A DNA stretch of 64,000 bases, from the sequence record NC_042100.1; one strand, 5' to 3'. The position numbers and the translations under genes are program-made. This document shows positions 8,376 to 24,130 of this stretch, in pieces. Below the pieces are notes generated by a model. That model was not told the origin of the DNA. It ran no database searches and saw nothing but the letters and a program-made list of their open reading frames with translations. Each line of letters starts with the position of its first letter. Positions within the stretch are counted from its first letter, which is position 1.

Positions 8376-9256
8376 TGGAACTTTTAGATTTTAAAAACAA
8401 AATGAAGCCGCTTAATAAAGCGGATCTGGTGAAGTTAATAAACAACCACCGCGACTTTACCGAAGGTGCTTACGACAACTTACGTCTATTGGTATCTGAA
8501 AACATTTCTTTGAGTGAAGCAATTGGTGGTTGGAAAATGGCACCAGCTTTATTTCAAGCAATGCGCGGCAATATTCCTAAGTCGATCAAAATGGAATCGA
8601 TCTTAGAAGGTGCGATTAAGAACGTGTTGTTGATCATCGACGTAATTGAAAAAGACGTTAAGTCCGGTCCGAGTGTCATCGCTAAAGAAACCGCGACGGT
8701 TAAAGAAGTCAACGCACTCATGTTGGATTCTTATATCTCGTTCTGGGTTGATTACTTAGCACGCTTGATGAACATGTTTACGTCAATGATGATTCATAAG
8801 AAATCGGCTGAACAAGTAGCACAAAAACCGGACCTTGAGTTCTTAACACAGAACCTAGAGCGTTTCGGTGAACTTACTTACATGTTCTTTGAACGTGGTG
8901 GTGTGGTTCTTAAACGTTACCGCTCAGCTCCTAAGATCGTTGCAGACGAACAGACAGTTGACGTCTTGACGGCGACTAAGGGTAAAGATGCTGTGCTGGT
9001 CATGCCGACTCGTAACTTCGGTCCGCACTCGCTTAACCCGGGTTACTGGTGGTCGATGTATCAAATGGAGCGTGCGTTGTCTCAGTATGAAGCAATGCAG
9101 AACTCTATCGAGTCTAATGCTCAGAAGATAAGCTACTACCGTGATCTTCAAAACCAAGATCCATCACCTGCAAACGAGAAAATGATCGAAAAACTTGAAG
9201 GTCGTATTATCTCTGCGCAAGCGAAGATGGAAGCAATTGAACAATCTTACAGCTAA
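8375..9256 (+). CDS. Inner head protein (phiKZ gp90-like)
   Basis: 293 aa with TAATG coupling. C-terminal NPGYWW...coiled coil...IEKLEGRI pattern. Synteny. Confidence 0.6.
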   Translation: MELLDFKNKMKPLNKADLVKLINNHRDFTEGAYDNLRLLVSENISLSEAIGGWKMAPALFQAMRGNIPKSIKMESILEGAIKNVLLIIDVIEKDVKSGPSVIAKETATVKEVNALMLDSYISFWVDYLARLMNMFTSMMIHKKSAEQVAQKPDLEFLTQNLERFGELTYMFFERGGVVLKRYRSAPKIVADEQTVDVLTATKGKDAVLVMPTRNFGPHSLNPGYWWSMYQMERALSQYEAMQNSIESNAQKISYYRDLQNQDPSPANEKMIEKLEGRIISAQAKMEAIEQSYS

Positions 9257-9267
9257 AGGGGTGTATC

Positions 9268-9777
9268 ATGAGTGACTTTCGTAAAGTTGCTTACGGCTAT
9301 GTCGATAGCCGTCTGTTAGACCCAACCCTTACTGTCATTAACGGTATCTTACGGGCCTACGTTCAAAGCTCGCAAGACATGACTATGCAAATTGACCCAG
9401 CGTCAATTAAAGAAGTCATTGAAATGGGTAACAAAATCACGGGTCAAGATTTCAAACACTGGATCACCGCTAACTACGAACGTGGTGCGGGTCGTCGTGC
9501 TCGTCTAATGCGCGCTATTACGTTTTTCTTAAATGGAAAGATCTCAGCACGCACTCTGGAACAAGCTATTACCGGGGATGAGCAATTCGTCACCACTACC
9601 GACATTAAACACATTAAGTCTGGTAACGGTCTCGTTGAACGACGTAACCTTGATGAAGTGGAAGACGTCATTCGTCATCTAAAACACGACGATATGTTCC
9701 GTCTCATTGAAGGTATCGGTCCTCAAATGTTTGCTCGTATGTTGATTACCTTTAATGGAGAATCTGCATATGCCTGA
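9268..9777 (+). CDS. Putative head protein
   Basis: 169-aa ORF with SD aagggg, inside the head operon. Confidence 0.55.
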   Translation: MSDFRKVAYGYVDSRLLDPTLTVINGILRAYVQSSQDMTMQIDPASIKEVIEMGNKITGQDFKHWITANYERGAGRRARLMRAITFFLNGKISARTLEQAITGDEQFVTTTDIKHIKSGNGLVERRNLDEVEDVIRHLKHDDMFRLIEGIGPQMFARMLITFNGESAYA

Positions 9778-11035
9778 ACAAGACGTTAGTAGTGAATTAG
9801 CGGCACTTAGTGTGGTCAGTTCTACTGAACTTGCAGATCAGGCAAAGGAAGGTCGCGATCTGGTTAAACTCCAAGAACAGATCAACAACTCGATTGACCG
9901 CGTAGAAGCGGTCAAAACAGTTTTAGGTCAAACGGAACCTAAAGATGTCACCCAACTATTTGGTAACATCGTTGACCGCCAACTGGAGCGCGTAGGGATT
10001 CGTAGCTTTGGTGATTCTGAAGAAGTTGCTGGTGTTGAATCTCTTGGTTACCAGTTAACACCGAAGCGTTACTTGGAAACTCGTATCGCGGCATGTGAGT
10101 CGTTCTTAACAGAATTCATGGACTGGAGTCGTTCTATCGCTAAACGCTTTTATGATGAAGTGTTAGAACAACTGGTCCTTATGAAAGACAGTCACGATAC
10201 TCTTACCAAGCGTGCTAAACTACTGCAAGGCAAGTTAAATGATAAGAACACTCAATTCCTAAAAGAGGAGTTGACAATGAGCGGAACCAACCGTGTACTT
10301 TTGTTAAACAACAAAGTGCCGGAGGACATCCATGCTCAGATCTTACGTTTCGTGGCTACTACGCGTGCTATCACGAGTAACTTCTACCGAGTTAACCAAG
10401 CTAACACCAATGAGATCATTTCTTACTTTGGTGGGTTCTCTGGGTTAAATGAAGAACAAGCGATCGAGCGTCTACTTAAACTCCCGCGTGCTTTGTCTAA
10501 GTACCAGTTTAAAGAAGCAATGTTCAATCTTCGTGAGCAATCTAACGACATCTATCAAACCCGTGCAAGTGTGACGTTATTGGGTGACCGACGTTACATC
10601 AATACGTTCCTCGTTAAGCGTGATGAATGTCGAGACATCACTCAACTTAAAGAGTGGGTTGAAACATACCGTAAAAACGAACGCATTAAGTTGGAGATGA
10701 TTGAACGCCCTAGCTCCGATGTAATCATCCCTTCGTTTGATAAAGATCAAATTGATCGTGCCATTCGCAACGTACATTCTACGTTACGCGATGTCGAAGG
10801 TTTGTTTAAAGAAGGGGATCGTTACTTAGTCGATGGTGCAGAGTACAAGAAAATGCTTGCGATGCTAAGTGACGTGACTTGGTCTGAAAGTACGAAGACA
10901 GCGGTCGGTGATGCTTACATCGCTTTAGTGTTAGCTCGTAACAACGAACAAGTCCGTATGCGTTCTGATGTTGTTAAATATACCACGTTGGTCATGAACG
11001 CTATCCTTAACGTTTGTGAATCCTCTATGGAGTAA
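9770..11035 (+). CDS. Internal head protein paralog
   Basis: SD ggag 9 nt before ATG 9770. The GVESLG and ACESFLTEF sites precede an amphipathic helix. Confidence 0.6.
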   Translation: MPEQDVSSELAALSVVSSTELADQAKEGRDLVKLQEQINNSIDRVEAVKTVLGQTEPKDVTQLFGNIVDRQLERVGIRSFGDSEEVAGVESLGYQLTPKRYLETRIAACESFLTEFMDWSRSIAKRFYDEVLEQLVLMKDSHDTLTKRAKLLQGKLNDKNTQFLKEELTMSGTNRVLLLNNKVPEDIHAQILRFVATTRAITSNFYRVNQANTNEIISYFGGFSGLNEEQAIERLLKLPRALSKYQFKEAMFNLREQSNDIYQTRASVTLLGDRRYINTFLVKRDECRDITQLKEWVETYRKNERIKLEMIERPSSDVIIPSFDKDQIDRAIRNVHSTLRDVEGLFKEGDRYLVDGAEYKKMLAMLSDVTWSESTKTAVGDAYIALVLARNNEQVRMRSDVVKYTTLVMNAILNVCESSME

Positions 11036-11037
11036 AC

Positions 11038-11991
11038 ATGGAAGAAGACGAATACACACCAGAACAACTAGCCTTAGCCTTTAAAGCTCTAGCTGGTGAA
11101 GAGTCTTTTCTCAGTGACATCCGAGACGCGATTGGTTTGGGAGGTTCTAAGACAGAACAAGTCAAAGAACTCGAGGACGGTAAACTTGCTCAACGTTTCA
11201 TGTTGGGCGCAAATACGGTGAGTCGTCTTACTTCCAAAGCCCTAGGTTCTAATGAAGGGGTGATCCAATCCCTTCTTAGTCGTGCTAAGTCGGTGGATGT
11301 CCACGAAGCAAAAGTCTCCGGTAAGTTGATCGCTGACCTAACCGTGGAATCTAATCCGGATCATCTGTTAAAGGATCAAAAGATCCTCACTGACACTATC
11401 TCCTTGGTAATGAAATACCAAAGTGAACTAGAATCCTACGGTACTCAGATCAACACCTTACTTAAAGCAGTGACATCCGCTAAAGGTAACGAACAACTGA
11501 CTGAGATCAGTACAAAACTTGGGTTGGTGAAATTCCCTATTCTGAAGTTAGAAAAACGTGACGAAGATGGGGAACATTCCGACGAACTTCCGGGTGGGAA
11601 GCAAATCCATTGTAAGACTAACCCAGTGGGTTTTGTTTTAGATGGGACAGCTGACCCTAAAGGTGAGCAAACCTTTGAACTGAGTAAGTCTGATCTAACG
11701 AAGTACTTAACTCAGATGCGTTGGGTGAATACTCAACAGAAGTCATTGAGTGAGATGATCAACCGTTACGCTAAGTTCTTAAAGAACTGGAGCACGACCG
11801 TTAAAGAAACTCAAACTCATCTGGATAAAACGGAAGGTGTGAGTAAGTCAGTGAACAACCAGTTAGTGAGCTTCATGGCACTCAATTCTTCCCAAGTGGA
11901 ATTTTATACGACGTTCCTTCCTCGACTGATTGCTTATTTGAATCACTATGTGAATCAAGGTAACGAATTAGCGACCGTTGTTTTAGACTAA
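11038..11991 (+). CDS. Internal head protein paralog with short propeptide
   Basis: AGEESFLSDIRDAIG site at about residue 20. LPGGKQI segment. Confidence 0.55.
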   Translation: MEEDEYTPEQLALAFKALAGEESFLSDIRDAIGLGGSKTEQVKELEDGKLAQRFMLGANTVSRLTSKALGSNEGVIQSLLSRAKSVDVHEAKVSGKLIADLTVESNPDHLLKDQKILTDTISLVMKYQSELESYGTQINTLLKAVTSAKGNEQLTEISTKLGLVKFPILKLEKRDEDGEHSDELPGGKQIHCKTNPVGFVLDGTADPKGEQTFELSKSDLTKYLTQMRWVNTQQKSLSEMINRYAKFLKNWSTTVKETQTHLDKTEGVSKSVNNQLVSFMALNSSQVEFYTTFLPRLIAYLNHYVNQGNELATVVLD

Positions 11992-12048
11992 TTTAACTTA
12001 AGGGGATCTTATCCCCTGATCTTTATTGCAATAAAGGAAACCATAACA

Positions 12049-13332
12049 ATGACACTTAGCATTAAAAACATCCTAGCGCTACACGCAGGGGTCGAGTCAC
12101 TAGAAACACCACCTGTTGACATGCCTGCTGAAGAAGTGGCTGAACTTACAAACGAACTTGAACACCAACAAATGCGTGCTGAGATTCGTGAGAACTCAAA
12201 AGAAATCGACGACACGGCTGAAGTGATCGAAGAAGTTCAAGATCAAGTTGAAGAACTAGAAGAAGTCGTTGAAGGCATGGAAGCGCTTGCTGCTCAACCA
12301 ACTCTTAACCGTCCTGCTATCGCTGTTCTTTACCGTCGTGCAGAACGCATCAACGCTAAACTTGGTGCAGAAGCTCGTCAACAAATCGCTGGTAACGAAA
12401 ACCTAGCATCGGACGATGCGTTCCGTTCTGCGGTTATTGACGGCTGTGAAGGCTTCATGGAAACTGCGAAGAAAGTTTACGAGACAACGTCTTCTTTCAT
12501 CAAGAACATTTTCTATGCGCTGGTTGACGCAGTTAAGAAACTATTCAGCTTTGCAACAGATCAATCTGCTAAAGCTGAGTCCATGAAAAAGCAACTGAAA
12601 GACAAAGAAATCAAGTCTGAAGTTAAACTAGGTGGTTGGAACCGTTTCTTCGAAGGTAATCTAAGTGTGCTCGACACAGTGATGACCAAAGTTGGTGATA
12701 TCGTTCCTGAATTCGGTGGTCTGCTAAAAGACATGTCGGATATTACTTCAGTAACAGAAAGCGATACTGCTTCACTACTTAACAAAGTAGAGGCACTCTC
12801 TGCTAAGTTTGAAGGCGTTATCAAAGGTGATACCATCCCATGGAATATCATTGGTGGTCGTGGTAAACAAAAAACTGCACGCGGTACCAGTGATAAAAAC
12901 CTGATCTACTGGTCTGTCCCGGGTAAAGGTCTGTTTACCCCAGATACTGTGGACAAAGCCATTGCAGAATTCTCTTTTGATGTTGCGACGGTTAACTACA
13001 CTAACATCATCGACGGCACCACACTAACTGGTACTTCGAAGGCGATGTTTGGTAAAGGTGACCTTGACGGTATCTTGAACAGCGTAATTAAGAACGCAGA
13101 AATGATCAAGAAGCTGAAGGCTAGCGTGGAAGGACTTAAATCCACAGTTGACGGCATCGTTAGTAAACTTAAGCAAGGCCCTAAAGAAGGTTCAGATGAG
13201 AAAGCAACCAAGGTGTTTATCTCTGCCCTTAAACGTCTAGTTACGAAACACAGTCAGTTAGTAAATAACTTCTGTCGTATTGTTTCTAGCATCGACGGTG
13301 CGAAGTTGCAAGCAGTGAAAGCTCACTTCTAA
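12049..13332 (+). CDS. Internal head protein, phiKZ gp93-family (phiKZ_IP, PF12699-like)
   Basis: Glu-rich propeptide with GVES, GMEA, GNEN and GCEGF sites, then KSEVKLGGW. C-terminus AVKAHF. Confidence 0.75.
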   Translation: MTLSIKNILALHAGVESLETPPVDMPAEEVAELTNELEHQQMRAEIRENSKEIDDTAEVIEEVQDQVEELEEVVEGMEALAAQPTLNRPAIAVLYRRAERINAKLGAEARQQIAGNENLASDDAFRSAVIDGCEGFMETAKKVYETTSSFIKNIFYALVDAVKKLFSFATDQSAKAESMKKQLKDKEIKSEVKLGGWNRFFEGNLSVLDTVMTKVGDIVPEFGGLLKDMSDITSVTESDTASLLNKVEALSAKFEGVIKGDTIPWNIIGGRGKQKTARGTSDKNLIYWSVPGKGLFTPDTVDKAIAEFSFDVATVNYTNIIDGTTLTGTSKAMFGKGDLDGILNSVIKNAEMIKKLKASVEGLKSTVDGIVSKLKQGPKEGSDEKATKVFISALKRLVTKHSQLVNNFCRIVSSIDGAKLQAVKAHF

Positions 13333-13342
13333 TCTGACTCTT

Positions 13343-13380
13343 AAAGCTGTGGTTCCTAGAACCACAGCTTTATTTTTTTA
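13343..13380 (+). terminator. Intrinsic terminator
   Basis: 13-bp stem AAAGCTGTGGTTC/GAACCACAGCTTT followed by ATTTTTTT. Confidence 0.85.
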
Positions 13381-13405
13381 TTTGTGTTCATCATAGGGTT
13401 GAGAA

Positions 13406-14596
13406 ATGAGTAAAGTGAGAACATCTTTACGAGAAAGTGTCATGGGTCTTGAATCCCTAGAGACATCCTCAGAAGAAACGTCGGAATTAGTTACTGACGT
13501 AAAACTTAAACAAAGCGGGATAGAAGTCAACAAACAACTCAAAGTCCTAGAAACAGAGACCGACACGATTGTTAGTCAGGACGAAGACTTAGAAAGTTTG
13601 GCTGACGCCGTTGAAGGCATGGAAGCCCTCATTAAGAGTGGTGAAACCAACACTCCAGCATTTTCACTTCTGTATCGTCATGCGGAGCGCCTCCACGTTA
13701 AGTTAGGTGGTGAACCCACCACACCTCGTTCGGGTAACGAAAACCTAACCCTAAAGTCTTTGGAAGCTCACGCTATTGTAGGCTTTGAAGGTTTCATGGA
13801 TACGGTAAAAGGTGGTGCTGACAATTTTGTGACCTTCATTAAAAAGATCATCGCTTACATTAAAGACTTGTTCTTAGATTGGTTTAGTTCGGAAAAGCAG
13901 ATTAAATCAAAAGTAGAAAAACTGAAAAGACGTTTAGCGAACAAAGGTGTTGCTAAAGAAGTCAAGGTCGGCGCATGGGGTGCACAAGAACCTGCATATC
14001 AAGGTACTGAAGAAGTAGATGAAAAATTCTACCAACGTTACCGTGAAATTGATGAAAAGATTCATCACGTGTTAATGGCTATTACTGACTTTAATAGTAT
14101 CGAGAAACTGTACGATAACCTTAACAAAATACGTGAAGGTCTTAAGTCCATGTATCCGTACAACGCGCCAGCCAGAGTCATGGGTAAATACACCACGTTG
14201 TCTTTACCGGGTTACCCGAGTGTTCGTTTCCTAAACACCAAGGTCAATAGTTTCCCGGACTCATTAGAGTTCATGAAATCATTACGTTTCTCCGATAACG
14301 TCCTTCCTTATCAACCGAAGGCAGGTAAGGTAAACTCCGAATACGACGCTACTAAGTTGAACGACACACTCGATACCGACATCCCTAAAGCGATGGCACG
14401 TGTTGAGTTTCTAAAGAGTTATTTACGTGGTCTTGAGCAAATGGAAACCCGTGCTCTCAATAAAAATCAGGACAACTACAGTAAATTCATAAAGAGTTTA
14501 TGTGGTATGGTGAGTGCGAAGATTTCTCGTGACATCCGTTGGACAATGAAAACGGTCAAGATGAAACTTGACATGGTAGAAGCACACATCGCTTAG
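13406..14596 (+). CDS. Internal head protein, gp93-family paralog
   Basis: GLES, GMEA, GNEN and GFEGF sites. KEVKVGAW. C-terminus MVEAHIA. Confidence 0.75.
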   Translation: MSKVRTSLRESVMGLESLETSSEETSELVTDVKLKQSGIEVNKQLKVLETETDTIVSQDEDLESLADAVEGMEALIKSGETNTPAFSLLYRHAERLHVKLGGEPTTPRSGNENLTLKSLEAHAIVGFEGFMDTVKGGADNFVTFIKKIIAYIKDLFLDWFSSEKQIKSKVEKLKRRLANKGVAKEVKVGAWGAQEPAYQGTEEVDEKFYQRYREIDEKIHHVLMAITDFNSIEKLYDNLNKIREGLKSMYPYNAPARVMGKYTTLSLPGYPSVRFLNTKVNSFPDSLEFMKSLRFSDNVLPYQPKAGKVNSEYDATKLNDTLDTDIPKAMARVEFLKSYLRGLEQMETRALNKNQDNYSKFIKSLCGMVSAKISRDIRWTMKTVKMKLDMVEAHIA

Positions 14597-14613
14597 TTGC
14601 TAAGGTAAAAAAA

Positions 14614-15813
14614 ATGAAAGGTGTTATGGCGGCTCGCCTAAGAGCAAGAGTTGCAGGTATTGAATCTTTGGATATGACTGAAGAGGAAGTCGTGCAGCTA
14701 GTAGAAGAAGTGGCTGAAAAGAAAGTCGACAACGAAGTAAAAGAGATCAGTAAAGAAGTTGAAAAACTCGCTGATAAGGTAGAAGAAGAAGCCGAACTGG
14801 TTGAAGAACTGGAAGAAGTTGTTGAGGGGATGGAAGGGTTGATCAATTCAGGCAATCCTAACCCTGCCGCTTTATCCATTCTTTATCATCGCGCGGAACG
14901 CATTCATACCAAGCTAGGTGGGACTACCACCATGCCACGCTCTGGTGTCGAGAACCTAACCACTAAAACGTTGGAAGCTCACGCGATCGTTGGTTTAGAG
15001 AGTTTCTCTGATACTTTAAAGAACGTAGGTGAATTCGGTAAAGATTTGGTGCGTCGATCCATTCAGTTCTTGATCGACCTGTGGAACTCCATCATGGGTT
15101 CGGAAAGTCGTATTAAACGCCAAATGAAAGAGCTTAATGAAAAGCTTGATAAAAATGGTGTTAAAGAAAAAGTTAAGTTAGGTCCGTGGGCGAATATGTA
15201 CCCGGCTTACTCAACTTTAGACGAAACGAAGAAAGATCAAGCTCAACTTGCTAACAACCTACTTGACATGGCCCAGACCTTCTTGGATAACATTGAAAAG
15301 CACATCACCAATGAAGGAGAATTAGTTTCTCACTGTAGTGATTTCCAGAAAGGTATCGAGACGTTTTACAACAAAGAAACGTCCGAGCTCACTAAAAGTG
15401 GTGATTTCACACTTTACCGTGTTTCACTGGGTCCGGGTATTCGTTACTATTCTGGTGAGATTAAAACGTTTGGTGACGCTAAGAAGTTCTTGAACTCGAT
15501 TCGTATCCTTCCATATTTAACGGATAAAGTTGAGTCTAAAGAAGTGTCCTCCGTATTTACTAAAACGGATCTCAAACGTTTTTTAAACGAACACGTTCCT
15601 AGACACTTAACTAACGTTAAAAACTCTAAGACCGCCATTAAGAACGTTGAGCGTGACATTAACCAGATTCTAGCTAAAGGACCTAAGCCAGAGTTACAGG
15701 GTTTGTTAAAAGCATACCTGAGTGCTTTAACGAATATCTTCTCAGGCGTCATGCGTAGTAATCAGCGCATAATTAAGGTTGATTTGGAAATGGTAAAAGT
15801 CCATATTGCATGA
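14614..15813 (+). CDS. Internal head protein, gp93-family paralog
   Basis: GIES, GMEG, GVEN and GLESF sites. KVKLGPW. C-terminus MVKVHIA. The start may be ATG 14626. Confidence 0.75.
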   Translation: MKGVMAARLRARVAGIESLDMTEEEVVQLVEEVAEKKVDNEVKEISKEVEKLADKVEEEAELVEELEEVVEGMEGLINSGNPNPAALSILYHRAERIHTKLGGTTTMPRSGVENLTTKTLEAHAIVGLESFSDTLKNVGEFGKDLVRRSIQFLIDLWNSIMGSESRIKRQMKELNEKLDKNGVKEKVKLGPWANMYPAYSTLDETKKDQAQLANNLLDMAQTFLDNIEKHITNEGELVSHCSDFQKGIETFYNKETSELTKSGDFTLYRVSLGPGIRYYSGEIKTFGDAKKFLNSIRILPYLTDKVESKEVSSVFTKTDLKRFLNEHVPRHLTNVKNSKTAIKNVERDINQILAKGPKPELQGLLKAYLSALTNIFSGVMRSNQRIIKVDLEMVKVHIA

Positions 15814-15917
15814 TCGATCACGTAAGGCAGGTAAATACCTGCCTTATCTTAGGGTGTTTACGAGTACCCTAAGATAAGGTCAGACGTGACCTAACATAAA
15901 CCTCATGAGGAACCACT

Positions 15918-17168
15918 ATGTCTATCCGTACAAAACTCTCAGGACTCGCTGGAATGGAGTCGATGTCGAGAGATGAAGTCACTGACGATCTCCATAAAAC
16001 TATCGTCGAAAACGTGTTCGCTAATGACGTGGGTGAAGAACTAGCACCACCAGAAGATTTAGAAGAACAAAAAATAAATAAAGCGATAGCAGAAGTCACT
16101 TCTGATATCAAAGAGTCAAATAAGGTGACTAAGTTTTACCTTAAACAAAAACAGAAACAAGAAGAAGCCGTACAAGACCTTCACGAAGCTGTAGAAGGAT
16201 TGGAGCAACTTCTAACGACCGATTACACCCACGAGTCTTTAAACGCTCTCACGCGCCACACAGAGCGATGTGCTAAACGTGCCGGATTATCTATTAAGCT
16301 CGGTGTAGCCGGTATGGAGGGACTTACTCCTGCTTCAGTCTATTTGTCCGTAAGAAGTGGTTTGGAATCACTGAACGGGGTACAACAAAATAATGCTGAT
16401 TCCATTAAGATTGGTTACGATCGTTTAATCAGTTCTTGTTCGGATGTTGAGAAACGTTATGACCTTTTATTGAAGCGTCTACATTTACTCATGGATCGTC
16501 TTAAGAAACACCCTGAGATTAAATCAGATATTTCACTTGGTGATTGGAACCAGTGGCTAAACGTTCAATCGAAGCCACCTAAACCAATCGTGAAACTCGT
16601 TAACTTAATGGAGATTGAGTACATACTGGATCGCATTAAGGTTTTGGATATCGTTTCTAATGACGACTCAGTGTCGGCTAAAGCTCAGGAACTGTTGAGT
16701 AAAGACATTAAGAAATCCATTGACGTGTCTCGTGATCGCACTGAAGACGGCAAAAATCATAATGCGTGGGAGTTCCGCTTTAATACCGCGTGCTTCTATT
16801 TTGATCTTCCTAATCAAAACGGGACTTCTCTAGAAGCACTTAAAGTGTACAACCTCCGTATGCAACCTTTCAGTTACCGTTACGCTGATAAATCGAAGAA
16901 CGTCTACCACGGTGTTGATGAAATGATTTCCGAGCTAGAAGAAATGATTTCGATCATCGAGGACACCAAGACCACTTACACAGATTGGAAGAAGTCATTA
17001 AAGACTCAACGTGATTCGGTTGTTTCTGCACTCAATGCAGGTAAAGTCGATTCGGGCAAAGCCCTAGGGTACGTCTCGTTACTTAATCGTTTCATGACCG
17101 CTTCCCAACGCGGTATTTACGAAATCATCTCGGCATACGAACATCTATTCCGCGCTCACTTGGTTTAG
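15918..17168 (+). CDS. Internal head protein, gp93-family paralog
   Basis: SD gagga. GMES, GLEQ, GMEG and GLES sites. DISLGDW. C-terminus LFRAHLV. Confidence 0.75.
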   Translation: MSIRTKLSGLAGMESMSRDEVTDDLHKTIVENVFANDVGEELAPPEDLEEQKINKAIAEVTSDIKESNKVTKFYLKQKQKQEEAVQDLHEAVEGLEQLLTTDYTHESLNALTRHTERCAKRAGLSIKLGVAGMEGLTPASVYLSVRSGLESLNGVQQNNADSIKIGYDRLISSCSDVEKRYDLLLKRLHLLMDRLKKHPEIKSDISLGDWNQWLNVQSKPPKPIVKLVNLMEIEYILDRIKVLDIVSNDDSVSAKAQELLSKDIKKSIDVSRDRTEDGKNHNAWEFRFNTACFYFDLPNQNGTSLEALKVYNLRMQPFSYRYADKSKNVYHGVDEMISELEEMISIIEDTKTTYTDWKKSLKTQRDSVVSALNAGKVDSGKALGYVSLLNRFMTASQRGIYEIISAYEHLFRAHLV

Positions 17169-17211
17169 GTGAACGCTCAAGATAACCCTCTTTAACTTCA
17201 TGAAGGAATCC

Positions 17212-18489
17212 ATGATGAACATACGTTTTAAACTAGCCGCTATCGCAGGGCTGGAAACACTATCGAGTGACATTAATCCAGAGGAGCTTCAAACCCACAC
17301 TACTGATGGTGAGTTATCCGCTGACGACGCAGTTATCGAAAACCAGATTAACTATGAAGTATCGGAAGCAAACTCTGATGTGAAAGAATCGGCTAAACTA
17401 GCAGAAAACTTCATTGAGAAAGAAGAAAAGCAAGAACAAGCTTTAAACGACCTAGAAGAAGCTGTAGCAGGTTTTGAAGGTTTATTTGAAGGTGAGTTCT
17501 CTCAAGTAGCTTATGAGCGTTTGATGCGGCACACAGAGCGTTGCGCACAACGTGCTGGTGTAGAACTCCCTATCAAGTTAGCAGGTATGGAGTCCATGAC
17601 TCCCGCTTCCATTTACCTTGATACCCGCAATGGTTTAGAAGGCTTTATGGACTCAGTTAAAGCTAAAGCGGGTGACATTAAGAAATTCATTGTGGATCTT
17701 TACCGTTTCATCATTGATTTGATTAAGAGTCAATTCAGTGCAGCTAAGAAACAGTCTGATGAGATCGCGAACCTTATCAAGCAGGCTAAAAACAAGAAAG
17801 GTCCGTTGAACGAAAAGATCACACTGGGTAAATGGAACGGTCTACTTAATGTAAATGACCTTGGTCTTCCTACTGAAAACGCTTACGCCAACATGTTGGC
17901 TGCGGTAGAGTCAGTTAACGAACTCAACGTACGACCTTTTGTCCTAGGCTCCTTGGATGAAGCCAAAACGCAACTACGTAATTTCGCCAATGCCGTCGGT
18001 CACCTAAAGGGTGATGTTCACACGACTGATCTAGACGGGGTTAAATGTAACGAGATTAAACTGGAGTTAGGTGGTGTGCGGGTTCTCATTAGCACTCCGG
18101 CAGCAAACACCTCAATTCCGGACGAACGTGGTCTAACTAGTATACTGCACATGATCAGCACCAGTAAGAAGGTTATCTCTAGTGGAGCAAATGTCGGTGA
18201 CTCAACCCCTGCTTATTACAAGAACGCAGAAACCGTGGTTAAAGTGCTGGAAGACATGAAAAGGGTTTCTGATAAATTGAGTGAGGTTTATCAGAAGCAA
18301 GTTCGGGCAATAGAGAGAGAACGTGATCTGGTCATCAGCGGTATCGGGATCGAAACATCGGGTGAAGCTAATTACCGTAGCTTGATCCGTAACTTGGTGG
18401 ACGCCAAACGTAAGATCTCTAAAGAAACGAACTCAGCTCTTCGTTCGGTAATGGGTGCACACCTAAGTTGCATACGCAGTCACTTATAA
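17212..18489 (+). CDS. Internal head protein, gp93-family paralog
   Basis: SD aagga favours ATG 17212 or 17215. GLET, GFEG, GMES and GLEGF sites. KITLGKW. C-terminus CIRSHL. Confidence 0.75.
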   Translation: MMNIRFKLAAIAGLETLSSDINPEELQTHTTDGELSADDAVIENQINYEVSEANSDVKESAKLAENFIEKEEKQEQALNDLEEAVAGFEGLFEGEFSQVAYERLMRHTERCAQRAGVELPIKLAGMESMTPASIYLDTRNGLEGFMDSVKAKAGDIKKFIVDLYRFIIDLIKSQFSAAKKQSDEIANLIKQAKNKKGPLNEKITLGKWNGLLNVNDLGLPTENAYANMLAAVESVNELNVRPFVLGSLDEAKTQLRNFANAVGHLKGDVHTTDLDGVKCNEIKLELGGVRVLISTPAANTSIPDERGLTSILHMISTSKKVISSGANVGDSTPAYYKNAETVVKVLEDMKRVSDKLSEVYQKQVRAIERERDLVISGIGIETSGEANYRSLIRNLVDAKRKISKETNSALRSVMGAHLSCIRSHL

Positions 18490-18496
18490 GTAATTA

Positions 18497-18500
18497 TATG
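18497..18500 (+). promoter_or_regulatory. Possible late (nvRNAP) promoter TATG
   Basis: TATG in AT-rich context just after the upstream stop. phiKZ late promoters have a TATG consensus. The motif is short and non-specific. Confidence 0.35.
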
Positions 18501-18613
18501 TAGAATACTATAGTACTGTAGTGCTACACCTTTCGGGATTGTGTGATGACCCCGTTTAGAAAATTTAATTAAATCTTCTAGTCAAAAAGACTAAACATCA
18601 AAGGAACATAGTT

Positions 18614-19852
18614 ATGAACCATATTCGTAATCAACTTATGTCACAAGTAGCGGGCATCGAATCACTATCGTCTGCTGAAGAAGCACAAGTTGAACAAATC
18701 GCTGAAAAGACTGCTGAAGAAGTAGCAGAGCTAGTGGCGGATAAAGCAGCTGAAGAGATCAAAGAAGAAGTCGAAGATCTAGCTGATGAAGTTGAAGATC
18801 TTTCTGAAGAAGTCGAAGAGATCGAAGAAGAAGTTGAAGAACTAGAAGAGTGTGTGGAAGGTATGGAAGCACTACTTAAATCTGGTGCTTACAACGCAGC
18901 GGCTTTCGGCATCCTTTACAACCGTGCTGATAAACTAAACGCTAAACTTGGTGGTAAGCCTTCAGGTTCAGTTGTTGGTGCGGAAGCTCTAGGTGATGCG
19001 ACATCTGCTGGTCTAGCGGCTCGCGAAGGTATCGAAGGCTTCGTAGAAACGGCTAAGTCTTACGGCGCGGCAGCACTTAAGTTCATCATGAACATGTATG
19101 AAGCTGCAAAGAGCTTTGTAAAAGGTCTACTAGACAAGTCTGTTGCTCTTGAAAACCAAGTTAAAGCAACTAAGGCTCGTCTAGAGAAAACTGAAGAGCT
19201 TAAGAAAGACGTTAAACCGGGTAAGTGGGCTTCACTAGCACGCATCACTAAGACAGACAAGATCGAAGCGTTGATCCGTTCTTCTGATAACGTAGTTAAA
19301 GCTGCGGGTAAACTAGCGACTAACGATGTTGCAGGTTACGCTTCTGCTTACAACGGTCTTAAATCATCGATCGAAGGTCTGGCGTCTACTGGTGACTCTA
19401 CTAAAGCGAAATCTGGCGATAAAGAAACTCACCAAATCAAGATCGGTGCGGTTACTATCGTGGCTTCAGTTTACACTGGCGAGATCAAAGAGCAAGCTGA
19501 CGTTTCTAAAGCAGCTAAGGCAACTGGTCTAAGCTTCTCTTCTGAGAAGAAAGCTGACGAGAAATTCCAAGCTCTTGACAAGTCTTCTGCTGGTACTCTA
19601 CTGGGTGAAGTGTCTAAGACAGCTGCTCGTCTGAAAGAGCTTAAGTCTTCTGAGTCTGGTAACGAGAAAGGCCGTGACGAACTAATCGCAGCAATCAAGA
19701 AACTTGAAGGCGACGATAAAGAGTGGGCTAAACCAGCAGTATCTGCGGTTAAAGCTTCTACAGCGATGACTAACAAGATCTTCACTGTTGCAGCACGTGC
19801 ACTAGGTACAATTGCTGACGCTAAACTAGCGGCGGTTAAAGCTTACCTATAA
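18614..19852 (+). CDS. Internal head protein, gp93-family paralog, probably high copy
   Basis: Very Glu-rich propeptide with GIES, GMEA, GAEA and GIEGF sites. DVKPGKW. C-terminus AVKAYL. Strong codon bias like the major capsid gene. Confidence 0.8.
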   Translation: MNHIRNQLMSQVAGIESLSSAEEAQVEQIAEKTAEEVAELVADKAAEEIKEEVEDLADEVEDLSEEVEEIEEEVEELEECVEGMEALLKSGAYNAAAFGILYNRADKLNAKLGGKPSGSVVGAEALGDATSAGLAAREGIEGFVETAKSYGAAALKFIMNMYEAAKSFVKGLLDKSVALENQVKATKARLEKTEELKKDVKPGKWASLARITKTDKIEALIRSSDNVVKAAGKLATNDVAGYASAYNGLKSSIEGLASTGDSTKAKSGDKETHQIKIGAVTIVASVYTGEIKEQADVSKAAKATGLSFSSEKKADEKFQALDKSSAGTLLGEVSKTAARLKELKSSESGNEKGRDELIAAIKKLEGDDKEWAKPAVSAVKASTAMTNKIFTVAARALGTIADAKLAAVKAYL

Positions 19853-19881
19853 TCCAACTCCCGTGTGGGTTAGATACTGAT

Positions 19882-19919
19882 GATCGGGGAGGGCTCAGGC
19901 TCTCCCCGATTATTTCACG
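19882..19919 (+). terminator. Intrinsic terminator
   Basis: Stem ATCGGGGAGGGC/GCTCTCCCCGAT (one G-U pair) followed by a T-rich tract. Confidence 0.7.
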
Positions 19920-19942
19920 TTTTCCTTTTAGAGGGTAACATA

Positions 19943-21031
19943 ATGAATAAAACAGATGCTGCTAAAGCTCAGTTGTCCACGGTTAAATCGAAATACGACC
20001 AAGCCAAGGACGGAACGAATAAAGCACTGAGAGAAGCAGACAAACCTCTGGACCCTAAGGACCAAGGTACTTTAGAATCAGACCTACCAGTTAACGCTGA
20101 CGACCTTGATAAGGACATGAACAACGTTAAAGCATTCCAGACGTTATCTGGGTTAGCAGGGTTTTCACCTAAGGTGGATGGAAACGAAGGTTTCATGGAT
20201 ACGGTAAAAGAAACCGTAACTTGGTTACTACGTCGTGCCAGTGATATCCTGAACTGGGTTTTGGATTACACGATGAACCGAGTGAGTTCTTTACGTCGCA
20301 AAATTACACGATTGAAGTACTCATTCAACGACAACGGCATCAAACTCAAAGATACGTCGTATCCTCGAAGTGTAATAAAGTTAGCGGTTAAACCTAACAT
20401 CCCTAGTACACCGGAGTTCGCTGTTAAGACGTTAGATGAAGCCCAACGCTTCTACAATCGCATGATGTCTCAACAAACACAGATTGCTAGTCTAACTCGT
20501 GCTTTCCCATCGGACATCACTAGAGAGCAGTTGTTGAATTTCTCAGACTCATTGAGCACAAGTTATATCAGCGGGATGGGTGGTAAACGTGTTAAAGATA
20601 ACCTTTACGAAATTCACATGCCGAGTGGTTTCCAAACGATCAAAGCAATGAGTAACCCAGCTCGTGGATTCAACGGGTTCACTTTGTCTGAATACTTCTT
20701 AGCGAAGATTTCACCAGTAATCCCAGACACGTTTACTCCGAGTGCAGATGTGGTTCAACGACTCATCCTTAAGCTGGATGTTTGTTTGATGGATGTGGAG
20801 AAATCCCATAAATCTCAACGTAGTTTTGCTAACAACTTTAAACGTACCGTACAACCACTCGCTGATGGTGTTAAACTCTATCCAGAGAAAACCAAAGACG
20901 AGATATTAAAATACTACCGCTGGTTAGTGAATTACCAACAGAAAACCGTCGCCATTCCTCTCAACTATTACCTGAGTGTAATCTCGGCTTCAGTCGATTT
21001 ATGTAACGCTCAAGTCCACGTATCTAAATAG
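19943..21031 (+). CDS. Internal head protein paralog
   Basis: SD gaggg before ATG 19943. DGNEGFMDTVKETV site. HMPSGFQ segment. Confidence 0.7.
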   Translation: MNKTDAAKAQLSTVKSKYDQAKDGTNKALREADKPLDPKDQGTLESDLPVNADDLDKDMNNVKAFQTLSGLAGFSPKVDGNEGFMDTVKETVTWLLRRASDILNWVLDYTMNRVSSLRRKITRLKYSFNDNGIKLKDTSYPRSVIKLAVKPNIPSTPEFAVKTLDEAQRFYNRMMSQQTQIASLTRAFPSDITREQLLNFSDSLSTSYISGMGGKRVKDNLYEIHMPSGFQTIKAMSNPARGFNGFTLSEYFLAKISPVIPDTFTPSADVVQRLILKLDVCLMDVEKSHKSQRSFANNFKRTVQPLADGVKLYPEKTKDEILKYYRWLVNYQQKTVAIPLNYYLSVISASVDLCNAQVHVSK

Positions 21032-21040
21032 GGCATTTCC

Positions 21041-22453
21041 ATGATTGAAGTATTTAAGAAGATCTTTTTCTTACTGCGCCTTCACCGTGCGTTAGAACTA
21101 GACAGTATGATTAAAGATCATCGCGATGTGATGATGTTAGAAGCCACCGCTAAAGAACTTGGTATCGACCCAGAGATCGTGGGGACGTTTACCCTTAACG
21201 AACCGTGGGTATTGTTATCTGCTATCCGCAACGAATTGATTCAACAAGCCCATGAGTGCCAGTCGTTCATGGAAGGGATCGACTTCCTCATTCCACGGTC
21301 CTTTGAAGAACGTCTGCGTCGTTTAGATTACTCGGAAATGCGGGATTATTGTCCGGATGTTAATTTCAACCACGCAGGGTTTATTAAGATGTTGACCCCA
21401 CAAGAAGTATCAGAAGAATTGATCTCTTCAGGTACTTTAGAGAAACTATTAGGGGACTTCCGACTGAACCTAGATGCATTGGAAGAACAGCTTAAAAAGA
21501 ACTATGACCGAGACATCAGACTCGCTGAAGAATGTAACCGCGACATGTTACTTATCTTTGCTATCTTTGAACACATCGAGTCAAAAGGTCTTGAGCTATT
21601 CACACCGGGTGATTCGGAATATGACATCTGGTACAAAAAGTTTACGGTTTACACTACATCGGCTGAAGCAGTCTTGGATTCCAAGTTACTGGATGATCCA
21701 AGTTCGATGAATAAAGAAGAACGCGAAGCGGTTAACTCAGCAATGGAAGAACTTGGTGTCGACGGCATGGAACAGTTCTGGAGTGAAGTTGATCAGCAAG
21801 CTTCTTTGCACTTACTTAAGTTCACTGGCAACGAAGACTTTAAGAGTGACGTGAAACGCATGGCAGGTAAAGCTGCGGAAATGTTAACTACCGCGCTTAA
21901 GTCTTTGAAGACTCGTTTTGATGAGCGAAAGAAAGAAGGTTCGAAAGAAGCGGAAGGTATTAAGGAAGCGATCGATAAAGCGATTTCTGATCTTAGTAAC
22001 AAAGCAGGCGAACCCGACGCTAATCTAGTTAAACAACTTCAACAACGTTTAACTAAAGCGGGCTTCGAGAAACAAGCTTCTAAGCTGAACGGTGTGACAA
22101 CGTACACTCAATTGGGTCAGGCTTTTAGTACCATCTCGGGTGAGTTCACTAGTATGATTTCAGAAATGAAAGAAGCAGAAGCCAAGTTACGTGAGGCCGA
22201 AGCTAAAGTGAAAGAAGCTTCCACACCACCGTCGGGTACTTCAGAAGACGCTGACGAAACCACCAAGGCTCAAATCAAAGCTCAAATGTCTGAAGCTCAA
22301 AAGACCGCTAAAGAGTTAATGAAGTCCGCTTCGACTTCTATCGGTGAATCTATGAAATCCATTGCGATGCTTCGTGGTATCAAATCCACACTGGAACGCA
22401 TCACTGAGTCTACTAAAGAGAAAGTAGATGGTCAGGAATCTTGGATGCTATAA
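21041..22453 (+). CDS. Head protein with long acidic propeptide and coiled-coil mature region
   Basis: GMEQ and GNEDF sites at about residues 243-266, followed by a Lys/Glu/Ala-rich helical region. Confidence 0.6.
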   Translation: MIEVFKKIFFLLRLHRALELDSMIKDHRDVMMLEATAKELGIDPEIVGTFTLNEPWVLLSAIRNELIQQAHECQSFMEGIDFLIPRSFEERLRRLDYSEMRDYCPDVNFNHAGFIKMLTPQEVSEELISSGTLEKLLGDFRLNLDALEEQLKKNYDRDIRLAEECNRDMLLIFAIFEHIESKGLELFTPGDSEYDIWYKKFTVYTTSAEAVLDSKLLDDPSSMNKEEREAVNSAMEELGVDGMEQFWSEVDQQASLHLLKFTGNEDFKSDVKRMAGKAAEMLTTALKSLKTRFDERKKEGSKEAEGIKEAIDKAISDLSNKAGEPDANLVKQLQQRLTKAGFEKQASKLNGVTTYTQLGQAFSTISGEFTSMISEMKEAEAKLREAEAKVKEASTPPSGTSEDADETTKAQIKAQMSEAQKTAKELMKSASTSIGESMKSIAMLRGIKSTLERITESTKEKVDGQESWML

Positions 22454-22522: not shown

Positions 22523-24127
22523 ATGCTTACTGCTCTTTTTGATGCTAGCGAGACGTACCGTAATGCGACTCGTCCCGCTATACTCGACAGCATCAATTCC
22601 GTACTGGAATTTTACCAAGTTCGAGAAAAAGATCTACGAGTATATTTGAACGGTGATGCACAAGACGCCCGACCAATGTATTCATCTCCTAACGATCATC
22701 CTCGTTCAGGACAATACACTGATTTTATTTTCAACAACAAATTGTTTGCTATTGCTGAAATCACGACGACCGAATTTAACTCTGGTTACGGGAACTTAGG
22801 TCGACAAATCAACAACGCACCTTTATGGTGTAATAAAGGCACTCGAACTGACTTAGTTCCTATTTTTGAAGGTCGTAAGATTAACGTGGATTGCAACGTC
22901 CATTTTAATACTCGACAACAAGCTAAGAACTTCCGCAACCGTCTACAACGCATTTATGATTTACAAGGTGCGAATCCGTGGTTCCGTGCGCACATCCATT
23001 ATCCAGTTCCTTACGAGTTTATGTTGCTTTCAAGTCACCTGCAACAACTGAGTATTAAGTCCGGATTATCTCAAGCAGACGAAAACTATCCAGATTGGTT
23101 TTTACGTCACTGTACGGTCCCTACAAGCATTCTAACCAATGCAGCTGGTGAAAACCCTATCTTTGGTATGAAGCGTCGCATAGAGAACTCTGAGATCATC
23201 TTAGAGGAACCAACGATTGCGCTTACACAACGCAACCAAGAAATACTAGGGAAATACGAAGTCAGTTTCCGTTATTCTTTTTATTGGCAAGAACTTACCA
23301 GTTGGAAAGTCAATTATCCACTGATGGTGAACCAGCACCCAATCAGCAAAGATTTTGTTAACAGTTTATTAGAAGAACCCGGGAACCCTCATTCACTGTA
23401 CAAAACCTTCGAGCTCCATGCAGGGGATTCGATCAAGGGATTCGACGGCACTAAGTACTACTACTACGCACGCTACCCATTACACGACCCTTGGTTCCCG
23501 CCACCTAACTACGAGCGAGTAGAACCTAAGGTGATCGTAAACTTCACGGTACGAGATGTAGAAGAGAAGCAGTTCTTGTTTAACATCAAAGCGATCCCGG
23601 GGATGCAATGGAATCCGGTTATTCTAGAATTCATATTAAAATACCATGACCTAATAACACGCCGTGGTAACTTGGTATTGTGGATGCAACTTTACTCCGA
23701 TGACACGCCAGTCTTGCAGCGTGACATTGAGTTGGATGAAGAAGGGAATTTGTATTTATTACGGGATCCCGTTATCGAGAATAACTATCGATTTGTTCTG
23801 AACCTAGATGGGATGTTGGGGTTGTTGAATGAACAGGGGAAACGTCTGATCATAGATGACGACAACTACCGCCTTAAAGTGCTACCGGAGATCTTCCCAT
23901 GGTGGAACTGGAACTCAATGAAACAACTGGAGCATGCTGGACCTTGGGGTTCCACTGGTATTCCGGTTCCGGGTACTGAGTACGCGGACCCTGACAAAGG
24001 GTATTACGACGATCGCGTGGTGATTACGCTAGATGACTTGGAAAAAGCCATTGACTCCATAGGAGCGTTACCTGAATTCCCGGATACTCCTTCTTTCATG
24101 TTAGATATGTCTTTAATTGCGAGGTAA
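22523..24127 (+). CDS. Virion structural protein (tail/neck/baseplate region)
   Basis: 534 aa, rich in aromatic residues and beta-strand character. Located directly after the head paralog array, as in phiKZ-like phages. Confidence 0.55.
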   Translation: MLTALFDASETYRNATRPAILDSINSVLEFYQVREKDLRVYLNGDAQDARPMYSSPNDHPRSGQYTDFIFNNKLFAIAEITTTEFNSGYGNLGRQINNAPLWCNKGTRTDLVPIFEGRKINVDCNVHFNTRQQAKNFRNRLQRIYDLQGANPWFRAHIHYPVPYEFMLLSSHLQQLSIKSGLSQADENYPDWFLRHCTVPTSILTNAAGENPIFGMKRRIENSEIILEEPTIALTQRNQEILGKYEVSFRYSFYWQELTSWKVNYPLMVNQHPISKDFVNSLLEEPGNPHSLYKTFELHAGDSIKGFDGTKYYYYARYPLHDPWFPPPNYERVEPKVIVNFTVRDVEEKQFLFNIKAIPGMQWNPVILEFILKYHDLITRRGNLVLWMQLYSDDTPVLQRDIELDEEGNLYLLRDPVIENNYRFVLNLDGMLGLLNEQGKRLIIDDDNYRLKVLPEIFPWWNWNSMKQLEHAGPWGSTGIPVPGTEYADPDKGYYDDRVVITLDDLEKAIDSIGALPEFPDTPSFMLDMSLIAR

Positions 24128-24130
24128 AGA

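Follow-up and report, generated by a model that had tools for sequence, protein, structure and literature searches.

Here, we analyzed six adjacent genes, gp107 to gp112, which lie at positions 12,049 to 19,852 of a stretch of 64,000 nucleotides (nt) from sequence record NC_042100.1 (hereafter the window) and all carry the RefSeq name "internal head protein". The segment, 7.8 kb in length, matches Vibrio phage Aphrodite1 (NC_042100/MG720308) at 100% identity, and the window corresponds to genome nt 124001-188000 of this 237.7-kb jumbo phage, which has Vibrio alginolyticus as host and is classified in the genus Aphroditevirus of the Gorgonvirinae (Chimalliviridae, phiKZ-like). A first-pass annotation had described the open reading frames (ORFs) as six tandem paralogs of the phiKZ gp93-type internal head proteins, and the family assignment is borne out by profile matches and by position. 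At a gathering score of 27 bits, PF12699 recognized gp107 (96.7 bits), gp108 (162.5), gp109 (194.5), gp111 (67.4) and gp112 (129.7) as well as the upstream genes gp105 (82.4) and gp106 (35.5), while PHROG 5750 matched six out of six of gp107-gp112 with e-110 to e-133. The genes are syntenic with the gp92-gp97 cluster of phiKZ: in orientation and size, the order gp87(-), gp88(-), gp89, gp90, gp91, gp92-gp97 of phiKZ equals gp100(-), gp101(-), gp102, gp103, gp104, gp105-gp112 of Aphrodite1. On this gene order, the region gp100-gp112 is recognizable as the canonical inner-body operon of phiKZ-like phages. Arrays of two to seven PF12699 paralogs, their multi-site processing and their abundance have been described for SPN3US, phiKZ, 201phi2-1 and phiPA3 (PMC5694885), and gp107-gp112 with their neighbours are a further member of this phiKZ-type family and do not form a new one.

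The array proved to be longer than the six genes first proposed. In a genome-wide scan, PF12699 gave eight matches, all of them contiguous and including gp105 and gp106, and the downstream gene gp113 bears the maturation motif of the family. The locus is a row of nine, with eight tandem PF12699 paralogs, gp105 to gp112, and one remote relative, gp113 (Table 1). The leader of gp106 ends in LAGEE-22↓SFLSD (the arrow marks the putative cleavage point here and below) and is followed directly by the mature-domain region. In comparison with the family profile, gp113 reached an hhalign probability of 93.5% over about 100 columns, aligning with residues 120-226 of gp112. When profiles of the mature domains were compared by hhalign, gp106, gp102 and gp103 gave no signal, although Pfam does match gp106.

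Table 1. Genes of the Aphrodite1 internal head protein array and other proteins with G-x-E motifs; positions are those of the window, cleavage sites are putative and are given by their Glu residue.
Feature	Position	Strand	Sites	Propeptide	Remarks
gp98	1025-2488	+	GGE↓SF at residue 84		candidate protease substrate
gp102	7254-8375	+	GLE↓SF at residue 126		phiKZ gp89 position; candidate protease substrate
gp105	9770-11035	+	AGVE-90↓S, AACE-110↓SF		PF12699 5.1e-23; phiKZ gp92 position; hhalign 95.8% to family alignment
gp106	11038-11991	+			317 amino acids (aa); PF12699 8.5e-9, hidden Markov model (HMM) positions 134-380
gp107 (P0001)	12049-13332	+	E16, E78, E117, E134	12049-12450	conserved "anchor" paralog
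gp108 (P0002)	13406-14596	+	E16, E73, E112, E128	13406-13789	variable zone
gp109 (P0003)	14614-15813	+	E17, E74, E113, E129	14614-15000	PF12699 4e-57; variable zone
gp110 (P0004)	15918-17168	+	E14, E96, E134, E150	15918-16367	
gp111 (P0005)	17200-18489	+	E19, E93, E131, E147	17200-17640	ORF start 17200, start in RefSeq 17215
gp111 replaced mature-domain segment	17677-18489	+			unrelated in sequence to USC-1 allele
gp112 (P0006)	18614-19852	+	E16, E85, E124, E141	18614-19036	conserved "anchor" paralog; model pLDDT 79
gp113	19943-21031	+	DGNE↓GFMDTVKE (site-4 type)		no N-terminal leader; divergent downstream relative
major capsid protein	38248-40443	+	E36, E52, E91, E104		731 aa; PF25620 PhiKZ_MCP 4.8e-130, domain from residue 92; PHROG 3231
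virion protein (PHROG 3004)	49363-52269	-	GNE↓SF at residue 177		968 aa; candidate protease substrate

The proteins gp108-gp112 share 20-30% identity with gp107. We aligned the six with MAFFT and used in addition a wider alignment of 31 family members from seven phages or contigs. In the six-protein alignment, the columns L9, G14, E16, L70, V74, G76, E78, L80, L94, G106, G115, E117, G132, E134, G195 and W197 were invariant, and among the 31 sequences the invariant columns were only the four G-x-E pairs and G..W. The four G-x-E sites that had been proposed at first sight are thus in register in all six proteins, and the G-x-W motif (G195, W197) and the C-terminal ending, which reads VKAHF, VEAHI, VKVHI, FRAHL, IRSHL or VKAYL, were likewise confirmed. 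In the N-terminal 128-150 aa, each protein holds four to six G-x-E motifs versus 0.6-1.2 in shuffled sequences (P = 0.03 to <0.0001 per protein), and zero to two occur in the remaining 266-293 aa. The four sites were also found in register in orthologs from six further genomes or contigs, among them phages USC-1, PDCC-1, phage 2 TSL-2019 and pTD1 and one metagenome contig. The single site change among these orthologs, G to S at site 3 of the gp110-type protein of pTD1, is within the known S/A/G-x-E motif. For the amphipathic helix, which lies after site 4, the outcome was divided, as the amphipathicity was significant in five of the six proteins (maximal hydrophobic moment, muH, 0.53-0.70, reached by at most 5% of shuffles) and not significant in gp110.

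The six canonical members share one layout. A leader of 14-19 aa ending in (A/M)-G-x-E↓(S/T) is followed by an acidic helical region and by three further invariant G-x-E motifs, and the mature domain, about 265-290 aa long, begins at G-x-E↓(G/S)-(F/L). Genome-wide, a leader motif within the first 45 aa was found only in the gp105-gp113 array. Mean pairwise identity amounts to 33% in the leader, 27% in the acidic region, 34% across sites 2-4, 23.5% in the long helix, 10.9% in the core and 17% at the C-terminus, and it was fair to call the cores not alignable by eye.

A homolog of gp175, the head maturation protease of phiKZ, is encoded at genome nt 23292-24185 on the plus strand, outside the window (E = 2.6e-21). 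This gp175-type protease carries GME↓SL at residue 220 and GME↓SF at residue 262, near its C-terminus, and both motifs (E220, E262) would fit a C-terminal self-cleavage like that of SPN3US gp245, which cuts off its own C-terminal 64 residues (PMC10052503). A genome-wide scan for G-x-E-[SG]-[FLM] was performed, and four G-x-E-[SG]-[FL] motifs are present in the N-terminal 104 residues of the major capsid protein, which suggests a leader of about 104 residues that may be removed in several pieces. The capsid-protein motifs lend independent support to G-x-E as the head-protease motif of this phage. In SPN3US, gp245 also acts on the capsid protein at E-130, on gp53 at E-12, E-95 and E-125 and on gp54 at E-124 and E-137, the mature N-termini reading G-W.. 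and S-L.. (PMC10052503), and phiKZ gp93 is cut at SLE-13 (PMC5694885; PMC11297242). The view that the G-x-E sites of the array are protease sites therefore found support in the presence of the gp175 homolog, in the motif in capsid leader and protease C-terminus and in the cutting of the homologous SPN3US proteins. Because the motif sits where such proteases cut in relatives, namely in the capsid leader and at the protease C-terminus, the rule by which Aphrodite1 head proteins are cut is very probably G-x-E↓(S/G)-hydrophobic with an invariable Gly at P3, while cleavage itself we infer. The T4 gp21-family protease (PF03420, Peptidase_S77) had no match in the genome at E <= 1, and a T4-type gp21 protease system was ruled out; the protease that the genome does encode belongs to the phiKZ gp175 type. 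Single motifs resembling site 4 are also present in gp98, gp102 and the 968-aa PHROG 3004 protein, all of them virion proteins and candidate protease substrates (Table 1).

The regions between the conserved anchors had been read in the first-pass annotation as diversified payload cassettes. Our comparisons argue against this part of the proposal and point to one homologous, helix-rich fold that is devoid of enzymatic or toxin domains above threshold. By BLASTP, the full-length proteins paired as gp108/gp109 (32% identity over 401 aa), gp110/gp111 (28% over 435) and gp107/gp112 (29% over 441). With hhalign profiles built from the mature parts only, i.e. from the sequence after site 4, all types were linked over 230-265 columns, with probabilities of 97.3% between the gp107 and gp112 types, 97.2% between the gp107 type and the gp111 type of USC-1/PDCC-1, 98.1% between gp108 and gp109, 99.5% between gp110 and the gp111 type of USC-1/PDCC-1 and 98.5% between the two gp111 types. 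AlphaFold models were calculated for gp112 (predicted local distance difference test, pLDDT, 79.3; predicted template modelling score, pTM, 0.74) and gp110 (pLDDT 77.1, pTM 0.69). These two are the least alike pair by direct comparison, yet after site 4 their models run through equal elements in equal order, beginning with a long helix, the G-x-W loop and two to three helices, continuing with a three-stranded meander, a short helix and a fourth strand, and closing with a C-terminal helical hairpin. In BFVD, whose models were predicted separately, both found the same full-length matches (E 1e-14 to 1e-7, template modelling score, TM, 0.5-0.78), among them Aphrodite1 gp109, USC-1 gp110, members from pTD1 and VP4B and proteins of Ralstonia RSF1, Erwinia Ea35-70, Klebsiella Eowyn and Pseudomonas 201phi2-1. 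We regard these matches as the more independent evidence, since our own two models share an alignment. Judged from the models, the mature domains share one fold, which is built of long helices and a small sheet of four strands and ends in a helical hairpin at the C-terminus.

Pfam matches below the cut-off to Tox-ART-HYE1 (0.027), HeLo (0.00097), Ntox35 (0.014, in a relative) and coiled-coil families fell on low-complexity helices and were rejected. A Foldseek search against the PDB with the gp112 model returned nothing at E <= 0.001, and among PDB sequences the family profile found only phiKZ gp162, at E 0.11. In a VIA search, the gp112 model matched the capsid-bound phiKZ protein gp86 (8y6v_G) with Z 9.4 and a root mean square deviation (rmsd) of 3.5 over 198 residues, exactly on the mature domain; this match is only a lead, because helical bundles often reach such Z.

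Where orthologs exist, the ratio of nonsynonymous to synonymous substitution rates (dN/dS, Nei-Gojobori) in the mature domains was 0.02-0.22, and there the domains are under purifying selection. Both a shared fold and, in members with orthologs, purifying selection count against payload cassettes; together they are the first of two outcomes that the first-pass annotation had named as refuting its reading. Compared with PDCC-1 and VP4B, gp105, gp106, gp107, gp112 and gp113 were conserved like the flanking virion genes (54-78%); gp107 has 60% identity with its PDCC-1 counterpart, which is the level of the flanking genes, and gp112 has 78% identity with that of PDCC-1 and 65% with that of VP4B. 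For gp108, gp109 and gp111 only paralog-level matches (30-38%) were obtained in these two phages, and the best match of gp108 outside Aphrodite1 and USC-1 is likewise at 30-38%. gp110 occurs in pTD1-type phages and is absent from PDCC-1 and phage 2 TSL-2019. By these identities, the array has conserved flanks and a variable centre, gp108-gp111. The annotated copy number is six in Aphrodite1 and USC-1, five in pTD1 and four in PDCC-1 and phage 2 TSL-2019.

Comparison of close relatives revealed that whole mature domains are replaced. Between Aphrodite1 and USC-1, the array proteins are 98-100% identical with the sole exception of gp111, in which the propeptide shows 75% and the mature domain 21-24% identity. 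On the nucleotide level, gp111 identity is about 90% in codons 1-60, declines to 58-75% up to codon 160, collapses to random after about codon 160-180 and recovers directly behind the stop codon. A tblastn search with the Aphrodite1 gp111 mature domain in 50,697 phage records found only itself, and among 5.8 billion proteins it had one relative, P0007 from a metagenome contig, with 61% identity in the mature domain and only 43% in the propeptide. In the second case, pTD1 was compared with the metagenomic contig L011: the flanks are 98-100% and the propeptide of the gp107-type protein 93% identical, whereas its mature domain has 38% identity, and nucleotide identity is 97-100% up to codon 120 with a crisp break at codons 125-140, which is site 4. 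The third case is the gp108/109-type protein of pTD1 versus VP4B, with 60% identity in the propeptide and 26% in the mature domain. The breakpoints lie at or near the maturation site. The modular architecture put forward in the first-pass annotation thus stands insofar as the N-terminal part is conserved and the mature domain that follows it is exchangeable, but the exchanged cores keep one fold.

Synonymous divergence (dS) was patchy along the array, which indicates recent recombination within the cluster. Between Aphrodite1 and USC-1, dS was 0.32-0.40 for gp105, gp106 and the mature domain of gp107, whose propeptide had 0.17, and 0.03-0.06 for gp108 and gp109. Between PDCC-1 and phage 2 TSL-2019, whose isolation hosts are of different genera, it was about 0.8 for gp105 and gp106, 0.3-0.8 in the flanks and 0 for the central genes, the alleles of which are identical. 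Nucleotide repeats between the paralogs were found only as short tracts coding conserved propeptide motifs, site 4 included, and these tracts are plausible recombination substrates. Window positions 9000-22000 hold no long near-identical repeat, and a reverse transcriptase (RVT_1) had no match in the genome. With neither a reverse transcriptase nor a template/variable repeat pair, a hypermutation cassette of the diversity-generating retroelement (DGR) type was ruled out.

We also noted an exact 25-nt repeat at 13787-13811 and 20186-20210, which codes for EGFMDTVK at the maturation site of gp108 and gp113; outside it, the two genes are unrelated at the nucleotide level. It may be the trace of gene conversion or a recombination microhomology. 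Matches to sigma-70-like promoters were depleted between window positions 9000 and 22000 (three observed versus 19.6 +/- 5.0 in shuffles), and terminator-like hairpins follow gp106 (12001-12017), gp107 (13342-13372) and gp112 (19886-19905), with two long hairpins after gp109. Hairpins and sparse promoters may set the relative expression of the paralogs.

One relative of the family contains a foreign domain. P0014, a gp107-type protein of 563 aa, is encoded in a pTD1-like array on Logan contigs of SRR14597286 and SRR14865023 (L011:7016-8707 and L012:1643-3334). It has a SUKH/SMI1-KNR4 domain (PF14567, 4e-12) at residues 30-148, exactly between AGCE-16 and a new site, AGNE-154, after which the normal propeptide resumes. 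The mature domain of P0014 is 62% identical to the Aphrodite1 allele versus 38% to that of pTD1, and the rest of the contig is pTD1-like. SUKH proteins are known to confer immunity to nuclease toxins and to have been recruited by DNA viruses (PMC3113570). A tblastn search of phages with the SUKH insert gave no match, and a word search for other SUKH-PF12699 fusions, which covered proteins of 310-985 aa with exact shared words, yielded only P0014. The insertion supports the idea of a loading platform, yet the cargo lies in the propeptide and not in the core. Another metagenomic relative (L006:1551-3074) is a 507-aa member with an extra N-terminal extension of about 100 acidic, Val/Glu/Ala-rich residues and no recognizable domain.

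The closest points of reference are the phages in which such proteins have been studied by experiment. The array resembles gp92-gp97, gp162 and gp163 of phiKZ in PF12699, in an operon that lies between the counterparts of gp87-gp91 and gp98-gp99 and in the gp175-type protease. In both phages, a leader that is cut (phiKZ) or putatively cut (Aphrodite1) after small-x-E at about residue 13-17 is followed by further sites and then by a helix-rich C-terminal domain. Sequence identity, however, is only about 10-20%, and the Aphrodite1 sites all have Gly at P3, whereas phiKZ has S, A or G. Between sites 1 and 2, a strongly acidic helix is predicted for Aphrodite1, while this part of phiKZ gp93 makes up capsid-bound arms and a helix-loop-helix. 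For phiKZ, processing and injection are experimental findings, and for Aphrodite1 they are predictions from the sequence. Injection has been shown for phiKZ gp92, gp93, gp95 and gp97; in the same phage, fluorescent fusions at the C-terminus enter the head and are injected too, gp162 stays in the head, and several paralogs tolerate transposon insertions. In phiKZ and Goslar, injected members co-localize first with the early infection vesicle and then with the phage nucleus. The inner capsid wall of phiKZ retains residues 14-84 of gp93 and residues 19-134 of gp162 (PMC11297242). These retained pieces do not agree with the earlier idea of the N-terminal part as a simply discarded targeting propeptide, and the "propeptide" may have a structural afterlife.

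SPN3US gp53 and gp54 ("paralog family A", high-abundance ejection proteins) are likewise pfam12699 proteins with propeptides of 125 and 137 aa and multi-site cuts, and their mature N-termini, G-W or S-L, compare with G-F or S-F in Aphrodite1. They differ in being two paralogs versus eight or nine and in A-x-E versus G-x-E, and here too experimental data stand against sequence-based ones. Goslar has six tandem genes of the PF12699 fold, gp53-gp58, in the syntenic region; some are recognizable by predicted fold only, which compares with gp110 and gp113, and gp58 is injected. In Goslar a single member dominates, with about 2150 copies. The internal proteins IPI-III and Alt of T4 also have a short N-terminal leader up to a head-protease Glu site, are packed with the DNA and ejected, and their IP genes vary among T4-like phages (PMC5694885). 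They are small, basic proteins whose leader has about 10 aa, whereas the Aphrodite1 propeptides have 128-150 aa and four sites and the mature parts are helix-rich with about 30 kDa. This likeness concerns the way of working only, and no relationship in sequence or fold is claimed.

Given these findings, we consider it likely that gp105-gp113 form the core of an inner body and ejection protein cluster, the products of which are cleaved, packaged and mostly ejected and represent one fold varied by domain replacement. The PF12699 proteins would be loaded into the prohead, where the gp175-type protease would cut after the Glu of G-x-E as for the capsid protein and for itself. The mature domains set free in this way would form a protein mass packed with the DNA; going by phiKZ and Goslar, most of them would exit together with the genome when the phage infects, while N-terminal pieces may remain on the inner capsid wall as in phiKZ. 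Diversity arises by gain and loss of genes in the middle of the array (gp108-gp111) and by recombinational replacement of whole mature domains. The present data show the sequence features, the homology, the predicted fold, the selection and the mosaicism, whereas cleavage, packaging and ejection in Aphrodite1 we infer from the same relatives; a delivery role for the array proteins is plausible.

Several points weigh against this interpretation. The relatives on which cleavage, copy number and ejection are modelled share only 10-20% identity, and as gp162 stays in the phiKZ head, ejection is not to be assumed for every paralog. gp110 alone stays under the PF12699 cut-off (23.9 versus 27 bits), its membership being supported by PHROG 5750 (2e-126), by hhalign (99.5% to the gp111 type) and by the agreement of the fold model. 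The mutual likeness of the gp112 and gp110 models is partly built in by the one 31-sequence alignment from which both were made. Furthermore, dS is saturated for the more distant pairs, and the gp111 breakpoint lies 15-30 codons beyond site 4 and not exactly on it.

We rate it as rather unlikely that the role of the proteins is confined to the capsid, where they would provide packing mass, spool the DNA or cement the shell without any function after ejection, and that the copies in the middle of the array are redundant and turn over neutrally. The N-terminal pieces of gp93 and gp162 do line the phiKZ capsid as fibre-like cement, each virion of SPN3US or Goslar contains the proteins in hundreds to thousands of copies, and the tolerance of transposon insertions in several phiKZ paralogs and a copy number that varies freely between phages would agree with redundancy. 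The gp112 mature domain, moreover, resembles capsid-bound gp86, but at a Z (9.4) within the range common for helical bundles. Such a role is at odds with the injected members seen at the early infection vesicle and later at the phage nucleus in phiKZ and Goslar and with purifying selection on each mature domain, and the central alleles with dS = 0 between flanks of 0.3-0.8 in PDCC-1 and phage 2 TSL-2019 suggest recent spread and not drift.

We find it improbable that the conserved N-terminal part and the helices are a delivery scaffold on which each core is a different effector, such as a toxin or an anti-defence protein, ejected into the host. Identity of about 11% between the cores of paralogs, central members for which sister phages have no orthologs at background identity, the swapping of whole mature domains between near-identical phages, the injection of family members in phiKZ and Goslar and the SUKH immunity-type domain within one relative's protein would all be expected of such a system. 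Full-length profile links and one predicted fold, shared with PF12699 proteins of Ralstonia, Erwinia, Klebsiella and Pseudomonas phages, speak for a common domain instead. No catalytic or toxin domain above threshold and no matching solved enzyme structure was found, orthologous cores have dN/dS of 0.02-0.22, and SUKH, the one real foreign domain, lies in the propeptide and not in a core. That the G-x-E columns are conserved structurally, as helix caps or turns, and not as protease sites is highly improbable. In favour of it, the uncut model places sites 2 and 4 inside helices or at their ends. Against it, two unrelated proteins, the capsid protein in its leader and the protease at its C-terminus, share the motif down to the P1' and P2' residues, G-to-S substitution is tolerated, homologous positions are cut in SPN3US and phiKZ, and the SUKH insert on L011 brings its own new AGNE site.

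Starting from the preferred interpretation as a cleaved, packaged and mostly ejected protein cluster, we tentatively suggest, with more doubt than confidence, that leader and propeptide constitute a natural portable module for capsid loading and ejection, behind or inside which mature and even foreign domains are exchanged by recombination at conserved protease-site sequences. The suggestion is made because SUKH is placed between AGCE-16 and AGNE-154, mature domains were replaced independently three times and the central alleles have dS = 0. The genes gp108-gp111 would then be a fast-turnover locus of ready-made proteins that enter the host with the DNA, serve in the first minutes of infection and possibly act in anti-defence.

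New in this work are the extent of the array, the G-x-E rule shared with capsid protein and protease, the layout of conserved flanks and variable centre, the domain replacement at the maturation site and the SUKH insertion. The G-x-E↓[S/G]-hydrophobic motif, common to the capsid protein, the protease and the array, provides a working cleavage rule for annotating head proteins of the Gorgonvirinae. The role of the many injected PF12699 paralogs has been openly termed an unsolved question of chimallivirus biology. The whole-domain difference in gp111 within arrays that are otherwise 98-100% identical, the contrasts in copy number and the SUKH domain bracketed by protease sites are natural experiments, and these contrasts can be used to ask whether the paralogs act in the capsid or in the host.

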